Shown here: positions 1,096-13,749 of the stretch, piece by piece
Layout: each line of letters opens with the position of its first letter
Numbering within the stretch: position 1 is the stretch's first letter
IMG/VR virus record: IMGVR_UViG_3300045999_010033
Span: 62,001-126,000 of that record
DNA: 64,000 nucleotides
Reading direction: 5' to 3' (one strand)
The notes under the pieces: generated by a model
Seen by the model: only the letters and a program-made list of their open reading frames with translations
Told to the model about the DNA's origin: nothing
The model's database searches: none
Made by a program: the position numbers and the translations under genes

Positions 1096-2211
1096 TTAAT
1101 TTGAAAGGGGAAGTTTAATTGCCGGATGTGATTGGTAATTTAATATCTTAATATCGTTTGGTTTATAACACTCCCAATTATCTTTCTTGCAAAGGTAATC
1201 AGGTAATTTATCCAATTTAGGCAAATCATACGGCGTTCTTGTCAATTGCTCTTTCAATCCATCTATGTGATTGAGATAGATGTGACAATCTCCCAAATTA
1301 CCAATCACTTCTTCGGGAATCATATTGACTTCTTTGGCGATAATTTCTAATAGAAGTGCGTAGGATGCGATGTTGAATGGGAGCCCCAATCCCACGTCCA
1401 CTGACCTCTGTGACCAAATTAAAGAGATTGCTCTGGTTGGTATATTATGTTCTGATAATTGTTTTTCTGTGTAATAGAACCTGTAATCTTGAGGTAGCTT
1501 ATCTTTATCAATTACTCCTAAATGCTTATCCATCAACTTCACTCTCTCTGTCTCGTCTAACTCTCTCGTATAAAATTGAAACGAGTAGTGACACGGTGGC
1601 AAGACCATCTGGTCGAGTTCTCCAACATTCCAAGCACTCACAAGTATCCTCCTACTATCAGGGTCTGTCTTCAGTAGGTGAATCGCGTTTGCGATTTGGT
1701 CTGTATATTCGCCCGAACCATTATAATAATCTGCCCAGCTTCTCCATTGGTTACCGTAGATTGGTCCTAATTCTCCCCACATCTTTGCAAACTCATCATC
1801 GGTTTTGATTTTGTTGATGAATTGTTCTTTTGTAAAATGGACATAATTAGGATACCCACTATTAAACTCTAATCCATCAACTTTAAAGTGTTTCTCTCTA
1901 TCATAGAAGGTAATTGATGATATTTGAGTATTTTTATACCGTTTATAAGCATCCCCATCCCAAATATGGCATCCATTATCCACAAGATACTTAATGTTTG
2001 TGGAGCCGCGTAAGAACCACAGAAGTTCGGTCACCATTGTTTTCCATGCCATCTTCTTTGTAGTGAGAAGTGGAAATCCATCCTTCATAGAATGACGTAT
2101 GGTTCTACCAAATACTGATTTAGTTCCAGTACCGGTACGATCTCCTTTAGTGTATCCGTTTTGTAATATGTCTTTGACTAGATCTAAGTATTGTTGCTCT
2201 ATGTTACTCAT
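1096..2211 (-). CDS. thyA: thymidylate synthase with two large insertions
   Basis: DRTGTGT, ELLWFL, LPPCH, QRSVDVGLGLPFNIASY (Asn = dUMP-specific), DCHIY. Confidence 0.97.
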   Translation of the reverse strand: MSNIEQQYLDLVKDILQNGYTKGDRTGTGTKSVFGRTIRHSMKDGFPLLTTKKMAWKTMVTELLWFLRGSTNIKYLVDNGCHIWDGDAYKRYKNTQISSITFYDREKHFKVDGLEFNSGYPNYVHFTKEQFINKIKTDDEFAKMWGELGPIYGNQWRSWADYYNGSGEYTDQIANAIHLLKTDPDSRRILVSAWNVGELDQMVLPPCHYSFQFYTRELDETERVKLMDKHLGVIDKDKLPQDYRFYYTEKQLSEHNIPTRAISLIWSQRSVDVGLGLPFNIASYALLLEIIAKEVNMIPEEVIGNLGDCHIYLNHIDGLKEQLTRTPYDLPKLDKLPDYLCKKDNWECYKPNDIKILNYQSHPAIKLPLSN

Positions 2212-2224
2212 TTCATTTTGTTTA

Positions 2225-2452
2225 TTAATCTAATACTTCTATTTGTGTTTTACCGCATTTCAAACAGATCCTTTCTTGAACTTCTTCCACATAATCAATA
2301 CTTTGTCCTGTTTTAAAGTTAAATTGTCTGCGTTCTCTATCATATCTTTTCCATTTGGTCCATTTATGAAAAAGGAAACAAGAACTCTTTTTCTCATTGT
2401 TAAATGTTTGTGCGGTTGTAAACCCAGTCATCATATATTCTGTGTTAGACAT
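2225..2452 (-). CDS. hypothetical protein, possible Zn-binding
   Basis: CFLFHKW ... CLKCG metal-ligand pattern. Confidence 0.6.
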   Translation of the reverse strand: MSNTEYMMTGFTTAQTFNNEKKSSCFLFHKWTKWKRYDRERRQFNFKTGQSIDYVEEVQERICLKCGKTQIEVLD

Positions 2453-2651
2453 TTTCGTTTTGTTTTATTGACTTATAGTTGATATCAGCATCTTTGTCTA
2501 CATAGGTTGTCGCTACACCATCGTTTTCATAAAGGTTATTGTTTTGTTGAGCCTTTAATATATCTTTGTAGTTTGTAAGTTTAGTAAACGTACCATACGA
2601 ATCTTTTTCGTAAAATCCTTCTTCTAAGTAGTTACCAAATAGTAGTCCCAT
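2445..2651 (-). CDS. hypothetical protein
   Basis: ORF track; packed in operon. Confidence 0.6.
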   Translation of the reverse strand: MGLLFGNYLEEGFYEKDSYGTFTKLTNYKDILKAQQNNNLYENDGVATTYVDKDADINYKSIKQNENV

Positions 2652-2676
2652 ATGTTATTCATTTTCGTTTTGTTTT
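2450..2676. repeat. 17-bp direct repeat at gene junctions (2450-2466 and 2660-2676)
   Basis: cattttcgttttgtttt occurs twice (AAAACAAAACGAAAATG on coding strand); both upstream ORFs end KQNEN(V/E)*. Confidence 0.8.
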
Positions 2677-2807
2677 GACATTTGATTTACAACATCATCA
2701 ATACTTTTTATCCATGCACCAATGATATCACGGAAATTAAATATTGACATATGAGCATCCCATATTTCTTTTGGTATTTCTACTTTAATGATCCTTTTGT
2801 TATTCAT
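2655..2807 (-). CDS. hypothetical protein (50 aa, not in ORF track)
   Basis: Hand translation MNNKRIIKVEIPKEIWDAHMSIFNFRDIIGAWIKSIDDVVNQMSKQNENE*; overlaps the upstream stop. Confidence 0.55.
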   Translation of the reverse strand: MNNKRIIKVEIPKEIWDAHMSIFNFRDIIGAWIKSIDDVVNQMSKQNENE

Positions 2808-3246
2808 AAACCTTTATAGTTTCTCCGTTATAGATTACAGTGATTTCTTTTGTTGGTGTTGGTTGATAGTATGGGTTATCATAGTCTGGTAATTGTTCAG
2901 GATTGAAAAATCTTTCCATACCAGTTTCATAGTTATTGTTGAACCAAATGTTATATCTTCTTTCTTCAGTTAACATTTGTTCTTCAATCTTTAAACCCCA
3001 CTTTTCGGAGAACTCTTGGTCGGTTTTACATTTGTTGATGAACTCATCTTTTGTATAAGCTCTAAGATCATAAGCAAATGACGGATTAGTAGAAAAGTGT
3101 TCATAGAATCCATCAAATTCAACTAAGCATCCATCCATATAACCCGTAATTCTATCTAAGCCTGCTTGTACTCCTATAACTACATGACTCAAATATCCTC
3201 TATGATAAACCTCATCAATGATTTGGTTGTATCTTTCTTTACTCAT
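2800..3246 (-). CDS. hypothetical protein resembling the ThyA insertion loops
   Basis: TKDEFINKCKTDQEFSEKWG vs ThyA TKEQFINKIKTDDEFAKMWG; PTKEITVIY vs PTRAISLIW. Confidence 0.75.
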   Translation of the reverse strand: MSKERYNQIIDEVYHRGYLSHVVIGVQAGLDRITGYMDGCLVEFDGFYEHFSTNPSFAYDLRAYTKDEFINKCKTDQEFSEKWGLKIEEQMLTEERRYNIWFNNNYETGMERFFNPEQLPDYDNPYYQPTPTKEITVIYNGETIKVYE

Positions 3247-3249
3247 AAC

Positions 3250-3795
3250 TTAATATCTTTCATAGTAATCAAATACTTCCTCTAATTGAGAAGGATCTTT
3301 AACCCACATAATCCAATCATCTTTCTCTATTTCTTCCTCTATTACATCAACATAGAATGTTTTTGGAGTAAATGGAAATCCTTTAATCCTTACTCTTATT
3401 TGATTCGTACTATTGATTGCATCCTCTCTTGTTAGATATAGCGGGCCTGTCCAAGTTGTACCATTTGGGCATCTCTTTACTATTGCGGTATTATAGGTGC
3501 ACGTTCCATCCGCGTATTTGAATACCGCACTATATCTTTTATTTTGAAGTACATCATCAAATACGTTTGCCCATTCATCATCCGTTCCTTGTACAGGAGA
3601 TAGTGGTTCAAATTTAGCAAGTTTACTAAAAATATGAATAACTCCAGCTGCCGACATCCCGGAGTGCCCTTGTTTGGAAAATACTTCGATTAATTCCATA
3701 ACGGCGTTTCCCGTCATTCCTTCATAGAAATCTCCTTCCTTCGAGAATAGTCCTGCTAATTCTAATTCTGATTTTGCGTGTTCTATTAGTGACAT
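3250..3795 (-). CDS. phage hypothetical protein
   Basis: 181-aa ORF with FSKQGHSGMSA segment; no assignable function. Confidence 0.75.
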   Translation of the reverse strand: MSLIEHAKSELELAGLFSKEGDFYEGMTGNAVMELIEVFSKQGHSGMSAAGVIHIFSKLAKFEPLSPVQGTDDEWANVFDDVLQNKRYSAVFKYADGTCTYNTAIVKRCPNGTTWTGPLYLTREDAINSTNQIRVRIKGFPFTPKTFYVDVIEEEIEKDDWIMWVKDPSQLEEVFDYYERY

Positions 3796-3798
3796 ATA

Positions 3799-4284
3799 TT
3801 ATTTTATTTGTTTTGCTACGTTTTCAAGTGATGCCCAATGTCCAGAAGATTTTGATGATAGTACACCTGCCGCTATACCTTTTCCTCGTGATTGAGTAGT
3901 TCCAACATATATGTTTGTTTTGGGGATATCCGAACCTTCAATGGCTGCTGATAGTTTTGGATTTGGTGCGTATGGTTCTATTATCCATATACGATTTGGA
4001 TCTATTGATTTTCTTTTTAGTATTTGTACCGCGTGTCTACAACCTGCACTAAACAATACCACTTTGGCACTTTTGTTTTTAGTTATTGCGTTTATTATTT
4101 CATTTGAGTTATCATTGTATCTGAACGCCATAACGGATTTATCTTTGCCGAATCCACTTTTGAATATGGTAACTTGCTCATTTAAAGATTTATACCCTGC
4201 TCCATCTAATCCGCCAACGAATATGACATCTATTGGTTGAAAAATGGTTTTGAAAAATAACGTTATAATTAATAGTATTTTCAT
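3799..4284 (-). CDS. putative secreted small alpha/beta-hydrolase-like protein
   Basis: Signal-like N-terminus; FVGGL, LFSAG elbow-like Ser, late His (SGHW). Confidence 0.45.
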   Translation of the reverse strand: MKILLIITLFFKTIFQPIDVIFVGGLDGAGYKSLNEQVTIFKSGFGKDKSVMAFRYNDNSNEIINAITKNKSAKVVLFSAGCRHAVQILKRKSIDPNRIWIIEPYAPNPKLSAAIEGSDIPKTNIYVGTTQSRGKGIAAGVLSSKSSGHWASLENVAKQIK

Positions 4285-4297
4285 CTGCTTTTATTAA

Positions 4298-4492
4298 TCA
4301 TATGGGTTCATCACTTTTATTAAGCGAACTGCTGATTGTGTGATGTAGTGGCATATATAAAGCATAAATCCCAACCGCTTCGAAGAAGTTTAGGTCGGGA
4401 ATTATATCTATAATCTTTGTAAAATAAGAAATAGCGAGTCCGATAATGGATGTAACGAAGATTACTTGTAGTGCAATTGATATTCCTTTCAT
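4298..4492 (-). CDS. small two-helix membrane protein
   Basis: Two hydrophobic stretches; directly downstream of a promoter motif. Confidence 0.6.
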   Translation of the reverse strand: MKGISIALQVIFVTSIIGLAISYFTKIIDIIPDLNFFEAVGIYALYMPLHHTISSSLNKSDEPI

Positions 4493-4515
4493 TTTATATT
4501 GTTTTGTTATTGCAA

Positions 4516-4546
4516 CAATATACGAAAGATTTAGGAATATTCCAAA
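4516..4546 (-). promoter_or_regulatory. Bacteroidota sigma-type promoter
   Basis: TTTG-N20-TATATTG on minus strand. Confidence 0.7.
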
Positions 4547-4548
4547 TT

Positions 4549-5559
4549 TTATTTTGTAATTGGTTGCGGGCCTCCTGCTGCACCGGTATCTGCTGCTTTT
4601 GCACGGATACCCATATCCTCTGCGAATTTGTTTGAACGTTTAACCAATGGAACAATAGGTTCATCAATTACCCTAACGTTCATAGAAATAGGTTTATCTG
4701 GATGTGCCGCGTTATGTGCAACAACCGCTGCCCAACGATGGTGTCCATCCAATACATACCCATCATTCGATATGTAAATAGGTGCAGTTATCTTAGCGTA
4801 TGCAGGATGGTCTGGGTTGTCAAGTACTTTACTCATTCCTGCCACTTTCACTCCAACCAATTCAGATTGTGTTGCTTTCAATCTGTCAGGTGGAACCGCC
4901 ATAGGTTTAGATACTTTGATACCTTTTTTGTTCAACATTTCTTTGAAAAACTCTTCGGTATCTGCTTCACCCGATTCATCCTTTGGAAGTTTATCAGCGG
5001 GCGAACCTGCTACCGGTGTTCCTTTAAATTGGGGCATATCTGCTCTTGGAATACCTTTGTTATCATCACAATAAAGGTTTGTTCCGGGAATACTCACCTG
5101 ACATAGATTGAAGTTTGGTGCTTTTTCTCCTTTCTCTTTTGCTTGCTTACCTAGCTCTGCAAGTTTATCTATGATGGTAGATATCTGCTGCCTTTCTATA
5201 TTAGAAACATCATCCAATCCTTTTTTAGATGTGTCTATTCCTGGTATCAATGATTTCAATTTTGTATCATCAATACCAGTTGTAGAAGTTTTTTCCGCAG
5301 AGCTCTTGAAATCAATATTTGAAGATTTTCCTGCAGGCGTTTGTGGAGTCGCAGTAGTATTTACTTTTGTAGTTTTATCTTTTTTGGAAGGTAATTTGCC
5401 GCCGTTTTTTTCTTTGGCAGTTTCTACTTCATCCGGAGTAGGTTTGTCATGAATATCTGGATTGAACGTTTTAACTTTATAAACGTTTCCTGTTTTCTTA
5501 TTTTTTACAATATCATCCTCATTGATGATATTGTAAAGCTTTCTTTCAATTTTATTCAT
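4549..5559 (-). CDS. ParB/sulfiredoxin-like domain protein with low-complexity N-terminus
   Basis: LKATQSEL ... PIYISNDGYVLDGHHRWAA (ParB-N DGHHR motif). Confidence 0.8.
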   Translation of the reverse strand: MNKIERKLYNIINEDDIVKNKKTGNVYKVKTFNPDIHDKPTPDEVETAKEKNGGKLPSKKDKTTKVNTTATPQTPAGKSSNIDFKSSAEKTSTTGIDDTKLKSLIPGIDTSKKGLDDVSNIERQQISTIIDKLAELGKQAKEKGEKAPNFNLCQVSIPGTNLYCDDNKGIPRADMPQFKGTPVAGSPADKLPKDESGEADTEEFFKEMLNKKGIKVSKPMAVPPDRLKATQSELVGVKVAGMSKVLDNPDHPAYAKITAPIYISNDGYVLDGHHRWAAVVAHNAAHPDKPISMNVRVIDEPIVPLVKRSNKFAEDMGIRAKAADTGAAGGPQPITK

Positions 5560-5924: not shown

Positions 5925-7127
5925 TTAAAATCCTTTATTTGGAAAGCGAGTCCATCCATTTATCCAAATAGGTTTTGAAAATATTTCCATTTCGGATTTT
6001 GTATAAACGACCTCTTTACTTCCTTGTGAAATTGATTTGGTCTTCATTTCAGATGCCGTAAATAAGGCCGAAGTTGACCTGAAATTCAATAGTGGATCGT
6101 ATGCTTGAACTTCATTGTTTTCAAATTTAGAAACACCATCCTTATAAGATTGTGCCGTTTCATTTGATTCAATACTAAAACCACCTTTTTGGTATCCCAA
6201 AATTTTTGAATTGGTTATAGTGAATCGAGTTGCTCTTCTCCATCTTAATCCTAAATTATGGTTTGGTAGGGCGGTTGCATCAAATGGACCGACTAATATC
6301 ATACCTATTAATTTAGGATGTGTAAATGGTTGTGCGGATGAACCCGTTCCATCGTTATCACATTCCACACCATTTCCGGCATCACCATTATCTACAAATT
6401 TTGGGTCTCTTTTTGCTACACCACTTTCAATTGTACCACAATATCCGAAATCAAAATCAAAATCATCATCGGCGGTTGCATATGCATATAGGTTTTTACA
6501 ATTAACAGTACCACCGAAAAATTCAAAAGCATCATCGTTTGCGTAAACCGTTTGCACATTTTCGATGATAGTCCCACTACCTACACCGCCGAGAGTCAAT
6601 CCATTTATTTCCGAATTGGGCATTGCTGCAATACCGGCGTATTCAATTCGGACATACTTTAGAATCCCACTATTGTCTGCATCATTCGTTCCACCATACG
6701 GTCTTCCGATTCCGCCTTCGATTGTAGGTTCAGTAGAGCGGTTTGTTGTTGCTTTACCTAAAATTACAACGCCACCCCAATCGCCGGGTGCTCTTTCTCC
6801 TACGGGTTTGCCCGAAGTGAATACAATCGGTTTTTGGGCCGTTCCTTCTGCTATGATTTGTGCGCCCCTTTCAACAATCAATGCACCTTTTTCTGCTATA
6901 TCGGATACTATGGTAGTACCTGGTTGAATAACCAGTTTTGCTCCATCGGTCACATACACATATCCTTTTAGAGTCCAAGTTTTGTCGGATGTCAATGTAA
7001 TCGTGGTATTGATATTTCCATTCAATGTGGTCGATGTAGGAACATTTGGGGGTGGGTCTCCTCCTCCCAATTCTTTTTTACATCCAAATAATACGATAAT
7101 ACAAATACCTAAAAGTAAATTTTTCAT
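5925..7127 (-). CDS. surface lipoprotein, probable beta-helix, partner of TonB-dependent receptor
   Basis: Lipobox LFGC at Cys16; GDWGG, YVRIEYAG, EINGLTLGGVG, DDAFEFFGG, DDDFDFDFGY acidic repeats. Confidence 0.75.
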   Translation of the reverse strand: MKNLLLGICIIVLFGCKKELGGGDPPPNVPTSTTLNGNINTTITLTSDKTWTLKGYVYVTDGAKLVIQPGTTIVSDIAEKGALIVERGAQIIAEGTAQKPIVFTSGKPVGERAPGDWGGVVILGKATTNRSTEPTIEGGIGRPYGGTNDADNSGILKYVRIEYAGIAAMPNSEINGLTLGGVGSGTIIENVQTVYANDDAFEFFGGTVNCKNLYAYATADDDFDFDFGYCGTIESGVAKRDPKFVDNGDAGNGVECDNDGTGSSAQPFTHPKLIGMILVGPFDATALPNHNLGLRWRRATRFTITNSKILGYQKGGFSIESNETAQSYKDGVSKFENNEVQAYDPLLNFRSTSALFTASEMKTKSISQGSKEVVYTKSEMEIFSKPIWINGWTRFPNKGF

Positions 7128-9376
7128 AATTTCAAATTTAATGTCAATGAAACGGTTTGTTCGTTGTTTGTTTTTATTAGATTCCTTTTTGTTTGTAACT
7201 TTTGATAATAAACCGATGGTTGTGCTAATATATCACCTATTGCCAATTTAATATCACCTCGTTTGATTTTGCGAAGAAACACTACATCAATAACATCCCT
7301 AGCGTTTTCAAAAATATCTGCGTATCCCTGAAATCCTACTGCTGATATTCTATCTCCAACTCGATTGTAAGATATGTTAAGTGTGTTTTGTTTTCTTTTA
7401 ATGTTTACGCCTGAGTTTATTACATAGTTTGATTGTCCCTGCAATTGTCTTTTTATTTTATTCACATTTACTTCCGAGTTCATAAGAGATGCATTTGTGT
7501 ACACATCTAACCAATCTTTTATTTTCTTCCGAACCTCAACCTCTACTCCAAAAAGTGTAGCCCGATTAGGGTTGGTGTATGTAAGTAAAAGATTAGAAGG
7601 AACTGAACCATCTGCTACAATTTGTTCAATTGGTTTTAGAAAATATTTACCAAATGCCGAAACGGATACACTTTGATTATCTGATATGTAATTCTCCCAT
7701 TTAAGGTCAATGTTATAGATGTCCGATTTTTCTAAATTTGAATTACCCAATATTTGTGCATTCCTTACAAAATCATAATAAGCAAAATTGGCTACCTCTC
7801 TAAATTCAGGCCTGGCTAATGTTTTACTTACCGAAAACCTATACTTTGTTTTCTCTAAATTGTAAGAAAGGTTTACCGATGGGAGTAGGTCTAAATAGTT
7901 TCTATCTACAGTTATCGGTGTACCACTAAAATCGGATGTATTTACTTTGAATGTATTATATTCGGTTCTTAGACCGGTATTGAGTTTCCATTTACCCCAA
8001 GTATTATCATACATCGCATATCCACTTGCTAAGTCAAAATCGGAATTGTATTTATCGGTATTGTTTGTAATTTCATCCAACATATCGGAAGCAGTATATC
8101 TAAATACTCTGGCTTTAAATTCTCTAAACTTTTTAGTATATCCTGCTCCTACTTTAACCCTACCAAAATCTTTATTAAGATTTCCATTAAACGCGTTTTC
8201 ATCCATTATAGACCAAAACCGATATGTATCTCTCCAAGCGATAGTGTATGGTGTATTTACTCCTAATGATTTAGTTATAGGATTTACTCTATAATCCGGT
8301 TGCTCTCTGAATGTAAAATTATACCCTAAATTAAAGTCCCAATCTTTTACCTTTCCATCTAATTGAGAATTGATGATGAATGAGTTAATATGATTTGAAG
8401 CATTACTCAATACATTTTGTACATTATCATAATTATTGCCCACACGCGTAAGATATGAATCATCTTTTTGATAATTCAAAAGGGTCTTCCAACTATAACG
8501 ATTTTTTCCCAAATAAGTTAAATTCAGCAATCCATTGGCTTGAAGCCTTTTTGTGTATAAGGTATCTTTATAATCATATGCCAACTCCGTTGATGATTGG
8601 TAATCCGTTCTTTCAATATAGTTTAACCCATAGGAGTTTCTAATCGTTGAACTCAATATACCATTCCACTTACCTCGCTTATATCCGGCCGAAAAAGAAC
8701 CATTTAAGTTAGAAGGTGAAGTGAATCCTTTTGCAACTGGTGATTCTATCAACTTTGTGAATGCCCTTCTATCTCCATTTGAGCTAGTTCTGAATGCATA
8801 CGTGGATGGAAACCTTTGTGGGAACTCCGTTTCTCTTACTAAAGAGAATGATTTGAATGATGAAACCATTCCCAATCCACTACCTAATGATAGGTTAATG
8901 CTATTATCAAATACATCCTTTGTTGTAATTTGCACCAATCCTCCGGTCCAATCTCCAGGCAAATTAGCCGCAGCCGATTTGGCTATGATAATATTATCAA
9001 CCAACGACGTTGGAATAATATCAAACGAAAACGCCCTTCTATCGGGTTCGGTAGATGGCAGTAATGTTTTATTTAACATTGCGGAATTATATCTGTCTGC
9101 CAATCCCCTTACTAAAACAAACTTATCATTTTGTACCGTTACACCTGAAATTCTTTTTAATGCATCACTAACCGTCCTATCGGGTGTTTTCTTAATAAAT
9201 TCAATTGATAATCCATCTGATACTACATTTGAATTACGAATTGTTTTTATAACGGATATTTCTGTCGTTTTTTGTCCGGTAGTTTTAACTGATATTTCGG
9301 ATAGTGTTTTGTTGAAAACGGTATCCTGACATATTACTCCAATTGGTAGTAGTAGAAATAAAATTATGGATTTCAT
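7124..9376 (-). CDS. TonB-dependent receptor (compact, 750 aa)
   Basis: Signal peptide; plug motif DALKRISGVTVQ...VRGLADRYN; KTLARPEFRE; GNSNL; amphipathic beta-strand C-terminus. Confidence 0.9.
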   Translation of the reverse strand: MKSIILFLLLPIGVICQDTVFNKTLSEISVKTTGQKTTEISVIKTIRNSNVVSDGLSIEFIKKTPDRTVSDALKRISGVTVQNDKFVLVRGLADRYNSAMLNKTLLPSTEPDRRAFSFDIIPTSLVDNIIIAKSAAANLPGDWTGGLVQITTKDVFDNSINLSLGSGLGMVSSFKSFSLVRETEFPQRFPSTYAFRTSSNGDRRAFTKLIESPVAKGFTSPSNLNGSFSAGYKRGKWNGILSSTIRNSYGLNYIERTDYQSSTELAYDYKDTLYTKRLQANGLLNLTYLGKNRYSWKTLLNYQKDDSYLTRVGNNYDNVQNVLSNASNHINSFIINSQLDGKVKDWDFNLGYNFTFREQPDYRVNPITKSLGVNTPYTIAWRDTYRFWSIMDENAFNGNLNKDFGRVKVGAGYTKKFREFKARVFRYTASDMLDEITNNTDKYNSDFDLASGYAMYDNTWGKWKLNTGLRTEYNTFKVNTSDFSGTPITVDRNYLDLLPSVNLSYNLEKTKYRFSVSKTLARPEFREVANFAYYDFVRNAQILGNSNLEKSDIYNIDLKWENYISDNQSVSVSAFGKYFLKPIEQIVADGSVPSNLLLTYTNPNRATLFGVEVEVRKKIKDWLDVYTNASLMNSEVNVNKIKRQLQGQSNYVINSGVNIKRKQNTLNISYNRVGDRISAVGFQGYADIFENARDVIDVVFLRKIKRGDIKLAIGDILAQPSVYYQKLQTKRNLIKTNNEQTVSLTLNLKL

Positions 9377-10473: not shown

Positions 10474-13400
10474 TTATTTACCAAAAATGTATCGTACACC
10501 CAATTGTGCTGTCCACACATCAAATACGGATGAGTTTCTTTGATAAGTATCACGTGCGAGAATTGTTGAACCATCAGGGTTTCTTTGAGTAGAAAGCCTA
10601 TATGTTGGTTCTCCAGCTGCGTTATAACTTACAAAGTTCAATAGAGCCGGTGCGGTTGCTCTTTGAGAAACACCCCATTTATCATTCATTAGATTTCCTG
10701 CGTTAAGAATATCAAACCTAACTTGGAATGTATTCTTTTGGTCTTTTACTTTTACATAAAAGTCCTGCATCACAGAGAAATCGAACCTATGAAGGAATGG
10801 AAGTACAAATCCGTTTCTTTCAGCGTATTGTCCACGACGACCACTAAGATATGGGTCTTGCAAAATGAATGCATCAAATGCTGTCTGTTGTTCTACTTCG
10901 GTGTAAGTCTTACTACCAACGGTGAGTGGTGCGAACTTAACTTCTGCTGCTGCTTTTGGTACATATACCAATTCATTATCACGAACCCTGTCACCATTAA
11001 GGTCACCGGCTACAAAGTAAGAGAATGGATTAGATTTTGCACCTACATAACCCAATGTTACGGTCGTTGCTCCACCAAACTTTCCACCATACTCTTTACG
11101 ATATCCGATAAGACCTACGATTCTATGTGGAAGGTTATTATCTGAAAGAGATAGTCCGAGGTTGTTATTACCATTTACGGAACGAGCACTTTGCCAGCTA
11201 CCACTTGCGATAGAACCTGCACTCATGTAATCTCTTGCTTCAGAAAGAGTATATGCTACTGAACCCCAAAGACCTTTAGCGTAAGGCTTTTCCAACTTAA
11301 CAATCATTGCTTTATGGTAAGGGCCATCCTTTGATGTCAATACCGCTGCCATTGATACGTTATCGTTGATACGAGTACCAGGGTCATTGTTGGCAAACTT
11401 TGCTCTATTATCAGAGCCACTCAAAGTTCCAACGGGTGATTCCAAATTAGCGTTGTAGTAATGAACTGCGTTAAGTGATTTATTATAAAATACTTCTGCA
11501 GATGCTACGAGTCCGAACCAAGGCAATTTTTGATCAACTGCCAAGTTACTACGCCATACTTGCGGAAACTTATAGTTCGGGTCGGTGAATGCCAAGTCAA
11601 ATGTAGTAGGAAGCGTTGGTGTTATCGGAGTGAAATACTGCGCCGGGTTGGCGGTGAATCCATAACCTGCAGCTGCTGCTCCACTTACATCAATAAATCC
11701 AGTGAGTACACCATTGTTTCCAACCTGATTAGAGATGAATACATACGGAGGGCGACCGGTGAAGATACCAGTACCACCACGAACTTGTGTGGCTTTCTTT
11801 CCTTCAACATCCCAGTTGAAACCGAACCGAGGCTCCCATAGGATTTGAGTTTCAGGCATTACCCCGGTATTGAATTTTTCACCATTAGCGAATGCCATAG
11901 CAGATACTGCTTTGTTTTCAAGTGCCGTATTTCCGATACCGATAACTGCTGCACGAAGACCAAAAGTTAATTTAAGATCTTTGCGGATATCCCACGCATC
12001 TTGTCCATATACATCAAATCGTGTGGTTTCCAAAACTTGCATTGGTTCTGCTCCACCCGATAGAGCGGAATATCTCATTTGAAAACGAGCAGGTGCAAGT
12101 GTTGAAGGTTTGCCACCATTTGCCAACGATTGATTTGCTGCGTTGTAAAAATCTGCCAAGCTATTAAAGATGTAAACACCATTAGAAGCGGGATAGAATA
12201 GATTATTAGATTTATATGCTTCGAAATTTACACCACCAGTAAAGGTATGTTTGTCAGCATATTTCGTAAGGTTGTTCGTAATGTGGAATGTACCATAGTT
12301 CAATTTGTTACCCGGAGTGAATGGGTCGAATCCTACGGAAGTGTAGGTTGCTGAACCTTCACGAATATCGATTGTGGGGAACATTTGAGAAAGATATGCA
12401 CGGTCTTCAATTTGCCTATCATATCCTACGATGAAATTGTTATGGAGTGTATTTGTGAACTTTGAGTTAAGTTCAACCACTGCTGAACGAGTGTTATCCA
12501 TAATAATATAACCACTATTCTTAAACGACATTGCGTTGAATTGTGTGGTTCGGTTTCCTGCACCAGCTGATTGAGAGTTTGAAATGTTAATCTCTGCTGA
12601 TGAATTATGATGTACATAACGTGCAGTCAATTTGTGTTTTGGATTAATATTCCAGTCAACCCTTACAAGAAACTTATTAGATTCGTTTGTATTAGAGTAA
12701 CCTTCCCAGGCGCCGGTTTCGTAATTGAATTTAGATTTCATAAATTCCGAAAGGGTCTTCATATCGGAATACTTAACACGACTTACTTGCGAACCTGTGA
12801 GTGGTGATCCTTCGGAAATCCAAGTGGTGCCGGGTTCGGTTCTTTCAAGTGTTTCATAGTTACCAAAGATAAAAAGTTTGTTCTTAATGATTGGTGCTCC
12901 CATACGGAATCCCCAAACCTTTTCATCAAACTTTGCCGCCGTTACAGGTACTCCATATGCACTATTTCCAACAAATTTGGAAGAGTTGTCACGGGTGAAT
13001 CCATATACCGAACCTTCGATATTGTTAGTACCACTACGCGTTACTGCGTTAATACCTGCACCAGTGAATCCGCTTTGACGAACATCATAGGGTGCTACGT
13101 TTACTTGCAATTGCTCAATGGCATCCAATGAAATTGCAGATGCTCCAGTTCTACCACCCGCTTGTGCAGATGAACCCAAACCGAAGTTATTATTGAATTG
13201 TGAACCATCAATCGTAAAGTTATTCATACGAGAGTCTTGCGCTCCGAATGATGCTCCATTACCAAATGGTGTGTATTTTGTTACACCATCAATAGTCCTT
13301 GCACCCGTAATGGGTACGCTTTGCAATTCTCTCCTTCCAAATTGTTGGGAGGCACCGGTTCTATCTTTTGAAAAGATTGGATTTCTTGTTCCCGTCACAA

Positions 13401-13749
13401 CGATTTCATTGAGTGAAGATGCGACATCAATGAGAACAAAATCAACGTTTGTGGTAAGACCCAATTGTGTGTTTACATCCTTAATCTCACCTTTGTTAAA
13501 TCCAACAAATGAAGCATGAATTGTGTATGGTCCTCCGACTCTTGCAGCGGGAATTACATACACACCGGATTTGTTAGTGTTAGTAAAGTATTCAGTACCG
13601 GTAGGTGTGTGTGTTACATGGACACTTGCACCACTTAATACTTCACCTTTTGAGTTTTTTACAACACCGGAAATCGTTGATGTTGTAATTTGGCTAAAAC
13701 CCAACAAACTTGCTGCTACTAAAAGTAGCGTCATCATTGTTTTTTTCAT
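10474..13749 (-). CDS. Oar-like TonB-dependent receptor with N-terminal carboxypeptidase-regulatory-like domain
   Basis: Signal peptide; ISGVV...GGPYTI domain; NNFTIDG, GFTGAGINAVTRSGTN plug; PRFGFNWDV, RGGTGIFTGRPP, GDLNGD; ends QLGVRYIF. Confidence 0.92.
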   Translation of the reverse strand: MKKTMMTLLLVAASLLGFSQITTSTISGVVKNSKGEVLSGASVHVTHTPTGTEYFTNTNKSGVYVIPAARVGGPYTIHASFVGFNKGEIKDVNTQLGLTTNVDFVLIDVASSLNEIVVTGTRNPIFSKDRTGASQQFGRRELQSVPITGARTIDGVTKYTPFGNGASFGAQDSRMNNFTIDGSQFNNNFGLGSSAQAGGRTGASAISLDAIEQLQVNVAPYDVRQSGFTGAGINAVTRSGTNNIEGSVYGFTRDNSSKFVGNSAYGVPVTAAKFDEKVWGFRMGAPIIKNKLFIFGNYETLERTEPGTTWISEGSPLTGSQVSRVKYSDMKTLSEFMKSKFNYETGAWEGYSNTNESNKFLVRVDWNINPKHKLTARYVHHNSSAEINISNSQSAGAGNRTTQFNAMSFKNSGYIIMDNTRSAVVELNSKFTNTLHNNFIVGYDRQIEDRAYLSQMFPTIDIREGSATYTSVGFDPFTPGNKLNYGTFHITNNLTKYADKHTFTGGVNFEAYKSNNLFYPASNGVYIFNSLADFYNAANQSLANGGKPSTLAPARFQMRYSALSGGAEPMQVLETTRFDVYGQDAWDIRKDLKLTFGLRAAVIGIGNTALENKAVSAMAFANGEKFNTGVMPETQILWEPRFGFNWDVEGKKATQVRGGTGIFTGRPPYVFISNQVGNNGVLTGFIDVSGAAAAGYGFTANPAQYFTPITPTLPTTFDLAFTDPNYKFPQVWRSNLAVDQKLPWFGLVASAEVFYNKSLNAVHYYNANLESPVGTLSGSDNRAKFANNDPGTRINDNVSMAAVLTSKDGPYHKAMIVKLEKPYAKGLWGSVAYTLSEARDYMSAGSIASGSWQSARSVNGNNNLGLSLSDNNLPHRIVGLIGYRKEYGGKFGGATTVTLGYVGAKSNPFSYFVAGDLNGDRVRDNELVYVPKAAAEVKFAPLTVGSKTYTEVEQQTAFDAFILQDPYLSGRRGQYAERNGFVLPFLHRFDFSVMQDFYVKVKDQKNTFQVRFDILNAGNLMNDKWGVSQRATAPALLNFVSYNAAGEPTYRLSTQRNPDGSTILARDTYQRNSSVFDVWTAQLGVRYIFGK

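Follow-up and report, generated by a model that had tools for sequence, protein, structure and literature searches.

A small phage protein composed of the non-catalytic insertion regions of the neighboring thymidylate synthase

A 148-residue phage protein (ORF148) is composed only of the non-catalytic insertion regions, with their anchors, of the thymidylate synthase (ThyA) encoded beside it, and belongs to a large, selected, and previously undescribed phage-only family whose function is so far a matter of inference. The gene lies within a 64,000-nucleotide stretch (hereafter, the window) corresponding to bases 62001–126000 of a 221,095-bp IMG/VR virus record (IMGVR_UViG_3300045999_010033) that is rated as complete by CheckV. 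The sequence occurs in many lake-water metagenomes and has a GC content of 33%. The presence of genes encoding two TonB-dependent/SusC-like outer-membrane β-barrel proteins (7124–9376 and 10474–13749, minus strand; Plug + OMP_b-brl_3 and CarboxypepD_reg + OMP_b-brl_4), which are unusual auxiliary genes for a phage and lie next to a 400-aa protein with a lipoprotein-like signal sequence (5925–7127), suggests a Bacteroidota host, as does the closest cultured ThyA, which is found in Flavobacterium phage vB_FspM_immuto (59% identity). A megablast search of 20 kb against GenBank phages found no match. ORF148 is located on the minus strand in a tight run of genes in which a Tad3-like gene, ORF148, three small ORFs, and thyA are separated by a few bases or overlap. 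The features of this region are as follows.

3250–3795, minus strand: 181-aa protein whose first 114 residues match the Pfam family Tad3 (type I Thoeris inhibitor; PF25185, E 2e-36), directly upstream of ORF148.
2800–3246, minus strand: ORF148, an intact ATG-started ORF encoding a 148-aa ThyA-derived insert-only protein (stop codon at 2800–2802).
3193–3228, minus strand: anchor 1, aa 7–18 (NQIIDEVYHRGY), homologous to ThyA aa about 79–92 (IWDGDAYKRY region) and part of the predicted N-terminal helix 2–34.
3055–3192, minus strand: site-1 variable cassette, aa 19–64 (GLDRI..CLVEFDG..YEHF type), absent or replaced in many family members and present at the small-domain site of ThyA in relatives.
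2995–3054, minus strand: anchor 2, aa 65–84 (TKDEFINKCKTDQEFSEKWG), two short predicted helices, homologous to the last helix of the ThyA small domain.
2974–2994, minus strand: predicted β-strand, aa 85–91 (LKIEEQM), taking the place of the ThyA strand FQFYTRE that follows the catalytic Cys.
2848–2973, minus strand: portable insertion module, aa 92–133 (LTEERRYNIWFNNNYETGME ... PTPTK), modeled as a helix plus a confident long loop.
2803–2847, minus strand: predicted C-terminal β-hairpin, aa 134–148 (EITVIYNGETIKVYE), the first strand of which is homologous to the ThyA strand AISLIWSQ, while the second strand and the YE end are specific to the family.
2225–2807, minus strand: three small, tightly packed or overlapping ORFs (75, 68, and 50 aa) between ORF148 and thyA.
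1096–2211, minus strand: ThyA, 371 aa, a bona fide thymidylate synthase carrying both insertions (PF00303, E 3e-95; NCBIfam equivalog NF002496, 340.5 bits against a cutoff of 325).
1774–1935, minus strand: ThyA site 1, a variable small-domain insert (aa 93–126) plus the anchor helix (aa 127–146).
1417–1560, minus strand: ThyA site 2, a 48-residue stretch (aa 218–265) with the same grammar as the ORF148 module (ELxxxER helix ... IPTR) but a diverged middle.

The initial annotation reported that four segments of ORF148 match ThyA in order, that these segments bound two non-catalytic ThyA insertions, and that the catalytic core is absent, and this observation is confirmed. The segments fall at ORF148 aa 11–18, 65–84, 88–101, and 131–139, and at ThyA aa 86–92, 127–146, 215–227, and 258–266. 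A pairwise BLASTP comparison finds only the 21-residue block to be significant (13/21 identical, E 6e-7 for this one comparison), while the other three segments are not significant in pairwise comparison. These segments become significant when profiles are used, as an hhalign comparison of the ORF148 family (107 sequences) with the insert-bearing ThyA family (74 sequences) gives one colinear alignment (probability 98.9%, E 3e-17) that pairs all four segments in order and places the region from ELGPIYG to PPCH in a single gap. The DNA match described in the initial annotation is off by one base. In frame, the block is 2995–3054 against 1774–1833 with 44/60 identical (45/60 at the coordinates first given, 2996–3055 against 1775–1834). 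Identity by codon position is 15, 18, and 11 of 20, indicating that the conservation is at the protein level and that this is not a recent DNA copy.

Comparison with a solved Lactobacillus-type thymidylate synthase (3UWL) indicates that anchor 2 and ThyA aa 127–146 align to the last helix of the known small domain, a roughly 50-residue variable insertion that precedes the conserved GxLGxxYG motif in the Lactobacillus casei-type enzymes (e.g., 3UWL, 1LCA). ThyA residues 218–265 are a net insertion of about 42 residues in the β-hairpin that follows the catalytic Cys, as 3UWL has 6 residues where the phage ThyA has 48, and solved enzymes lack this insertion. To the extent of the literature searches carried out here, no free-standing version of the small domain has been described. 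ORF148 has no counterpart to the N-terminal 80 and C-terminal 100 residues of ThyA, and the catalytic Cys in the PCH motif, the dUMP-binding Arg residues (DRTGTGT, DSRR, QRS), and the FNIASY Asn are missing. ORF148 matches no thymidylate synthase model (PF00303/TIGR03284), while the neighboring ThyA passes both, even though ORF148 is homologous to part of the ThyA fold. Since ORF148 lacks every catalytic ThyA element, it cannot bind dUMP or make dTMP.

Intermediate sequences provide further support for this relationship, as every part of ORF148 occurs at 55–85% identity as an insertion inside ThyA proteins of related phages. An exhaustive phmmer search returned 399 clusters at E 1e-3 or better, and a word-indexed search returned 523 intact proteins, the closest of which is 92% identical to ORF148. 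Among these are true ThyA proteins that carry ORF148-like sequence (P and L numbers denote individual proteins and phage loci, respectively). P0116, L019, L247, and L248 contain the ORF148 site-1 cassette and anchor in the small-domain position; P0358, P0259, and L019–L041 contain the ORF148 module (55–85% identity) in the site-2 hairpin; and P0263, P0265, and P0267 contain the module at a third site, before the conserved TREPxPLP segment. P0329 joins the ThyA N-terminus directly to an ORF148-type C-terminal half. In the 222-aa ThyA fragment P0266, a site-3 module runs straight into the sequence that normally follows site 2, giving an internal duplication, while P0298 (219 aa) joins an unrelated N-terminus to a ThyA C-terminus; these are either recombination at the module or assembly chimeras.

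The ORF148 family of about 400 clusters is found only in uncultured, mostly freshwater phages. Members share an N-terminal helix motif (M-x-K-E-x-Y-N-Q-I-I-D-E-x-Y), the EEFINKCKTDxEFSEKWG-LKIEE anchor, an ELSxEER ... PTK frame, and a C-terminal strand pair ending in YE, and ORF148 possesses these features. Residues F69, F79, G84, I87, E89, L92, R97, P131, Y139, and Y147 are nearly invariant in the family alignment. Between the anchors lie two cassettes that vary in length and sequence and assort independently. The family has no Pfam, NCBIfam, or PADLOC match, and a search of PHROGs gave nothing below E 0.05. Furthermore, no relative was found in a scan of 185,579 cellular genomes or in a tblastn search of 50,697 GenBank phage records, and literature searches found no description of this family or of the ThyA inserts in phages. 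The size of the family, its tandem arrays, and the portability of the second insert described below were not recognized in the initial annotation.

The initial annotation named pseudogene-like decay as a result that would count against its proposal, and none was found. Comparison of ORF148 with its orthologue in L001 gives a dN/dS of 0.19, evenly across both halves, while the value for ThyA is 0.26. The possibility that ORF148 is a decaying fragment of a second thyA copy, or a chance similarity limited to the 20-residue block, could be entertained from the single significant BLASTP block and from the split and rearranged thyA genes in relatives; however, this is already refuted by the profile alignment, the number of homologues, the purifying selection, and the confident, compact predicted fold. 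The AF2 model of ORF148 has a pLDDT of 80 (above 85 for residues 60–148) and a pTM of 0.65. The predicted elements are a helix (2–34), a poorly modeled cassette (34–59), helices 66–75 and 77–82, a strand (85–91), a helix (94–105), a confident long loop, and strands 133–139 and 142–147. The ThyA model shows the same order of elements at the homologous places (helices 128–137 and 139–145, strand 208–217, helix 220–230, and strand 260–272). Foldseek searches of the PDB and AFDB clusters and a wide VIA-align search found nothing for the ORF148 model (best E 0.3–2, best Z 3.5), and an ESM Atlas feature search gave only unnamed clusters with scores of 0.65 or less. In contrast, the ESM Atlas shape search places a viral 364-aa insert-bearing ThyA cluster first, with 113 aligned residues over ORF148 residues 8–148, spanning both halves (TM by query 0.47), and BFVD returned three uncharacterized phage proteins that are likely relatives. 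These results are consistent with the two inserts forming one lobe but do not prove it, as the claim that the inserts touch rests on a TM of 0.47 between predicted models. It may be inferred from established thymidylate synthase structures that the deletion joins points that are close in space, since the residues flanking the deleted core (the Tyr of GPxYG and the catalytic Cys) both line the dUMP site.

The direction of descent is indicated by several observations. Anchors 1, 2, and 4 correspond to parts of the ordinary ThyA sequence: anchor 2 aligns to the small-domain helix of a solved cellular enzyme, and the rest of that alignment runs through the ThyA stretch that anchor 1 matches and resumes in the core at residue 266, the end of the stretch that anchor 4 matches. 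The site-2 insertion is a hallmark of the phage clade, as 64 phage ThyAs have 44–65 residues between PCH and QRS, compared to 17 residues in 49 of 55 cellular ThyAs, and the best cellular relatives are 43% identical or less. On 95 shared columns, 71 family members and 59 core-deleted ThyAs fall on opposite sides of one branch with an SH-aLRT support of 100. This is compatible with a single origin, although the separation is driven in part by systematic differences in the strand residues.

Family members are linked to thyA. In 12 of 13 distinct loci that hold family members, a ThyA-family gene follows on the same strand within a few kb. Tandem paralogues are frequent (2–4 copies in L003 and L052). 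In L163 (1047–8016), two ThyA-family genes (332 and 364 aa) flank an array of at least six family paralogues with overlapping starts and stops, which suggests translational coupling, and the methyltransferase and glycosyltransferase genes that follow hint at DNA base modification. In the window, no minus-strand terminator-like site lies between 4300 and 1000, so an operon-like arrangement is likely; of the three intervening small ORFs, only the 50-aa ORF is conserved in L001. Conversely, only 5 of 80 phage loci centered on closely related insert-bearing ThyA genes have a family member within 8 kb, always upstream on the same strand, indicating that the family is accessory and dispensable for this ThyA clade. 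There is no direct evidence of expression, as only two RNA runs each contain 4% of the sampled words, and their short partial contigs may come from relatives or from DNA.

ORF148 residues 89–133 constitute a hyperconserved 45-residue module that is also found at ThyA sites 2 and 3 and in an unrelated enzyme. The module recurs at 76–88% identity in roughly 400-aa proteins of loci L039–L080 (e.g., L039:10004–10138), which are T4 Rnl1-type RNA ligases (PF09511). In these ligases, it is inserted right after the KxDGSL adenylation motif and replaces the 5-residue turn of a β-hairpin between T4 Rnl1 residues 109 and 115. Between copies in different hosts, pS is 0.5–0.75 and pN is 0.05–0.17 (dN/dS of 0.06–0.12), with synonymous sites near saturation, indicating that the peptide itself is under strong constraint and ruling out recent transposition of the DNA. 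Rickettsia palindromic elements are selfish 100–150 bp elements inserted in frame into protein-coding genes (PMC2996958), and the module is similarly a roughly 135-bp in-frame insert at surface positions of unrelated proteins. However, five copies of the module show no palindromic or RNA-structure signal (fold z-scores from −1.63 to +0.34), and conservation is at the protein level. The module is also not an intein or mini-intein: inteins have a Cys/Ser/Thr nucleophile at the first residue, His-Asn plus a nucleophile at the C-terminal junction, and a size of about 130 aa or more, whereas the module is 45 aa, starts with E-L-[ST], ends with P-T-P-K, and has no HN motif.

Taken together, the analysis shows that ORF148 is homologous to the ThyA insertion regions, lacks the catalytic core, and has evolved under purifying selection, while its fold is predicted and its expression, binding, and mode of action are inferred. 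Its identity and origin are held with high confidence: it is a member of a family that arose from a phage thyA gene by loss of the N-terminal 80 residues, the roughly 60 residues between the small-domain helix and the strand after the catalytic Cys, and the C-terminal 100 residues. What remains is the accessory part of this phage ThyA clade, namely the helix before the small domain, a variable cassette, the small-domain helices, and the β-hairpin carrying the 45-residue module, which is predicted to fold on its own into a small α/β domain. That it is an expressed and selected protein is likely. In the favored view, ORF148 is probably co-transcribed with thyA and most likely acts as a free copy of the ThyA accessory lobe that works through the surface it shares with the inserts and engages whatever partner the lobe engages, either as an adaptor or regulatory subunit working alongside ThyA-family enzymes or as a competitor for the same partner, with the 45-residue module as the likeliest business end. 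This shared-partner mechanism is tentative, as nothing shows that the lobe has a partner; the explanation as a whole is held with moderate confidence. A complex prediction for two copies of ThyA with ORF148 scored 0.00 and gave no answer, providing no support for binding and no evidence against it.

The interpretation offered in the initial annotation is partly supported: the structural and evolutionary half is borne out, while the functional half, in which the free protein is a decoy or mimic of ThyA for a host sensor, is neither supported nor refuted. A decoy would titrate a host sensor, inhibitor, or protease that recognizes the surface of phage ThyA, or of any enzyme tagged with the module, and so protect the enzymes or blunt an immune trigger. 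Hypervariable cassettes between conserved anchors and common tandem arrays are typical of conflict interfaces, the family is found only in phages, and in this window the gene directly follows the Tad3-like gene, Tad3 being a ThsB-binding inhibitor (PMC13728456). However, the Tad3-like gene is not a neighbor in any of 160 related loci, no known anti-defense or PADLOC family matches ORF148, and a literature search turned up no defense system reported to sense ThyA. The extreme conservation of the canonical module is also the opposite of an arms-race surface. The decoy reading is considered unlikely.

A second possibility is that ORF148 is a trans-acting accessory subunit, in which the lobe is either inserted in the enzyme or encoded beside it and binds the enzyme. 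Family members overlap or abut genes for ThyA-family enzymes that lack the inserts (a 275-aa PF00303 protein in L008 and L052), and the canonical module is found either inside ThyA or in a family member upstream of it. This either/or pattern comes from loci selected on the module and is not statistically supported, given that only 5 of 80 loci chosen by ThyA similarity alone have any family member. Furthermore, the window contains both an insert-bearing ThyA and ORF148, and the subunit reading remains doubtful. MicroProteins and other truncated paralogues that keep only an interaction domain of a larger protein offer a comparison, since ORF148 is small, derives from a larger enzyme gene, lacks the catalytic part, and is encoded beside the parent gene. 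ORF148 differs in that the retained part is made of two segments that lie about 60 residues apart in the parent and that the copies occur in tandem arrays with shuffled cassettes; binding to the parent would be by analogy only.

The thyA region is a hot spot of gene remodeling. In L006 (12279–14267), thyA is split at the small-domain site by a 242-aa ORF with a NUMOD1 domain, probably a homing endonuclease, and in L247 and L248 (around 2700–5060) it is split after the YGKQWR motif, suggesting that the insertion sites are permissive loops in a recombination hot spot with homing-endonuclease activity. Phage genes split by free-standing homing endonucleases include nrdA of phage Aeh1, and the T4 mob genes are a related case (PMC2790892); in contrast to these, ORF148 is not one half of a split enzyme, as the window has a complete thyA and ORF148 lacks the core on both sides. 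Lake metagenomes contain relatives that lack the ORF148 site-1 cassette (a joint from 3051 to 3205 at a depth of 42–49, compared to about 7–10 for the window's own genome), so that presence and absence variants coexist in the same lakes. Metagenome contigs also pile up hundreds to thousands of times deeper on the conserved anchors of thyA and ORF148 (1777–1887 and 2887–3108) than on their flanks, and many related phages in the same lakes share these short stretches. These observations, together with the occurrence of the same cassettes in family members and in ThyA of different phages and the position of the arrays directly upstream in the same orientation, raise the possibility that the partial copies serve mainly as donors for gene conversion that diversifies the ThyA inserts, like the silent cassettes of pilS/pilE and vls, which lack their own start, stop, and expression signals and are not selected as proteins. 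This reading is very unlikely, as family members have their own conserved ATG, a C-terminal strand and stop that ThyA lacks, and family-specific anchor residues, form one group apart from ThyA, and are under purifying selection along their whole length. The shared block in this window, with 11/20 identical third positions, indicates there has been no recent conversion.

A more speculative and unlikely reading, which the evidence leaves possible, is that the module (ERRYNIWFNNNYETGME ... PTPK) is a portable peptide tag that freshwater Bacteroidota phages graft into β-hairpin turns of unrelated enzymes (ThyA at two sites, Rnl1 RNA ligase) and also express free on ThyA-derived scaffolds such as ORF148. 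All carriers would then dock to one common partner, either a phage factor that organizes or localizes these enzymes or a host factor that the free copies titrate. This would be a new kind of modular, protein-level address-label system in phages, with ORF148-type arrays acting as its soluble competitors or adaptors.

Variable surface insertions of conserved enzymes are usually treated as meaningless decoration. In this case, two insertions of a phage thymidylate synthase have been kept, without the enzyme, as a protein that has been selected, multiplied in tandem, and diversified in hundreds of phage lineages, and one of them has been grafted, almost unchanged, into an unrelated RNA ligase. This argues that the inserts carry a function of their own, such as an interaction or a localization signal, and a 148-residue soluble protein and a 45-residue peptide offer a simple handle for finding it. 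The findings also define a large uncharacterized family in jumbo and other phages from lake metagenomes, for which the cultured phage vB_FspM_immuto, with its 423-aa, three-insert ThyA, could serve as an experimental entry point. Two other genes of this region have features of possible interest. The 75-aa ORF between ORF148 and thyA (2225–2452, minus strand) contains one CxxC motif (CLKCGK) and has a weak PHROG hit to an HNH endonuclease family (E 0.015), suggesting that it may be a small zinc-binding protein or an endonuclease remnant. A 336-aa protein (4549–5559, minus strand) with no Pfam match carries a DGHHRW motif reminiscent of ParB/sulfiredoxin-type nucleases and has close homologues in three related phage loci (L095, L135, and L142).
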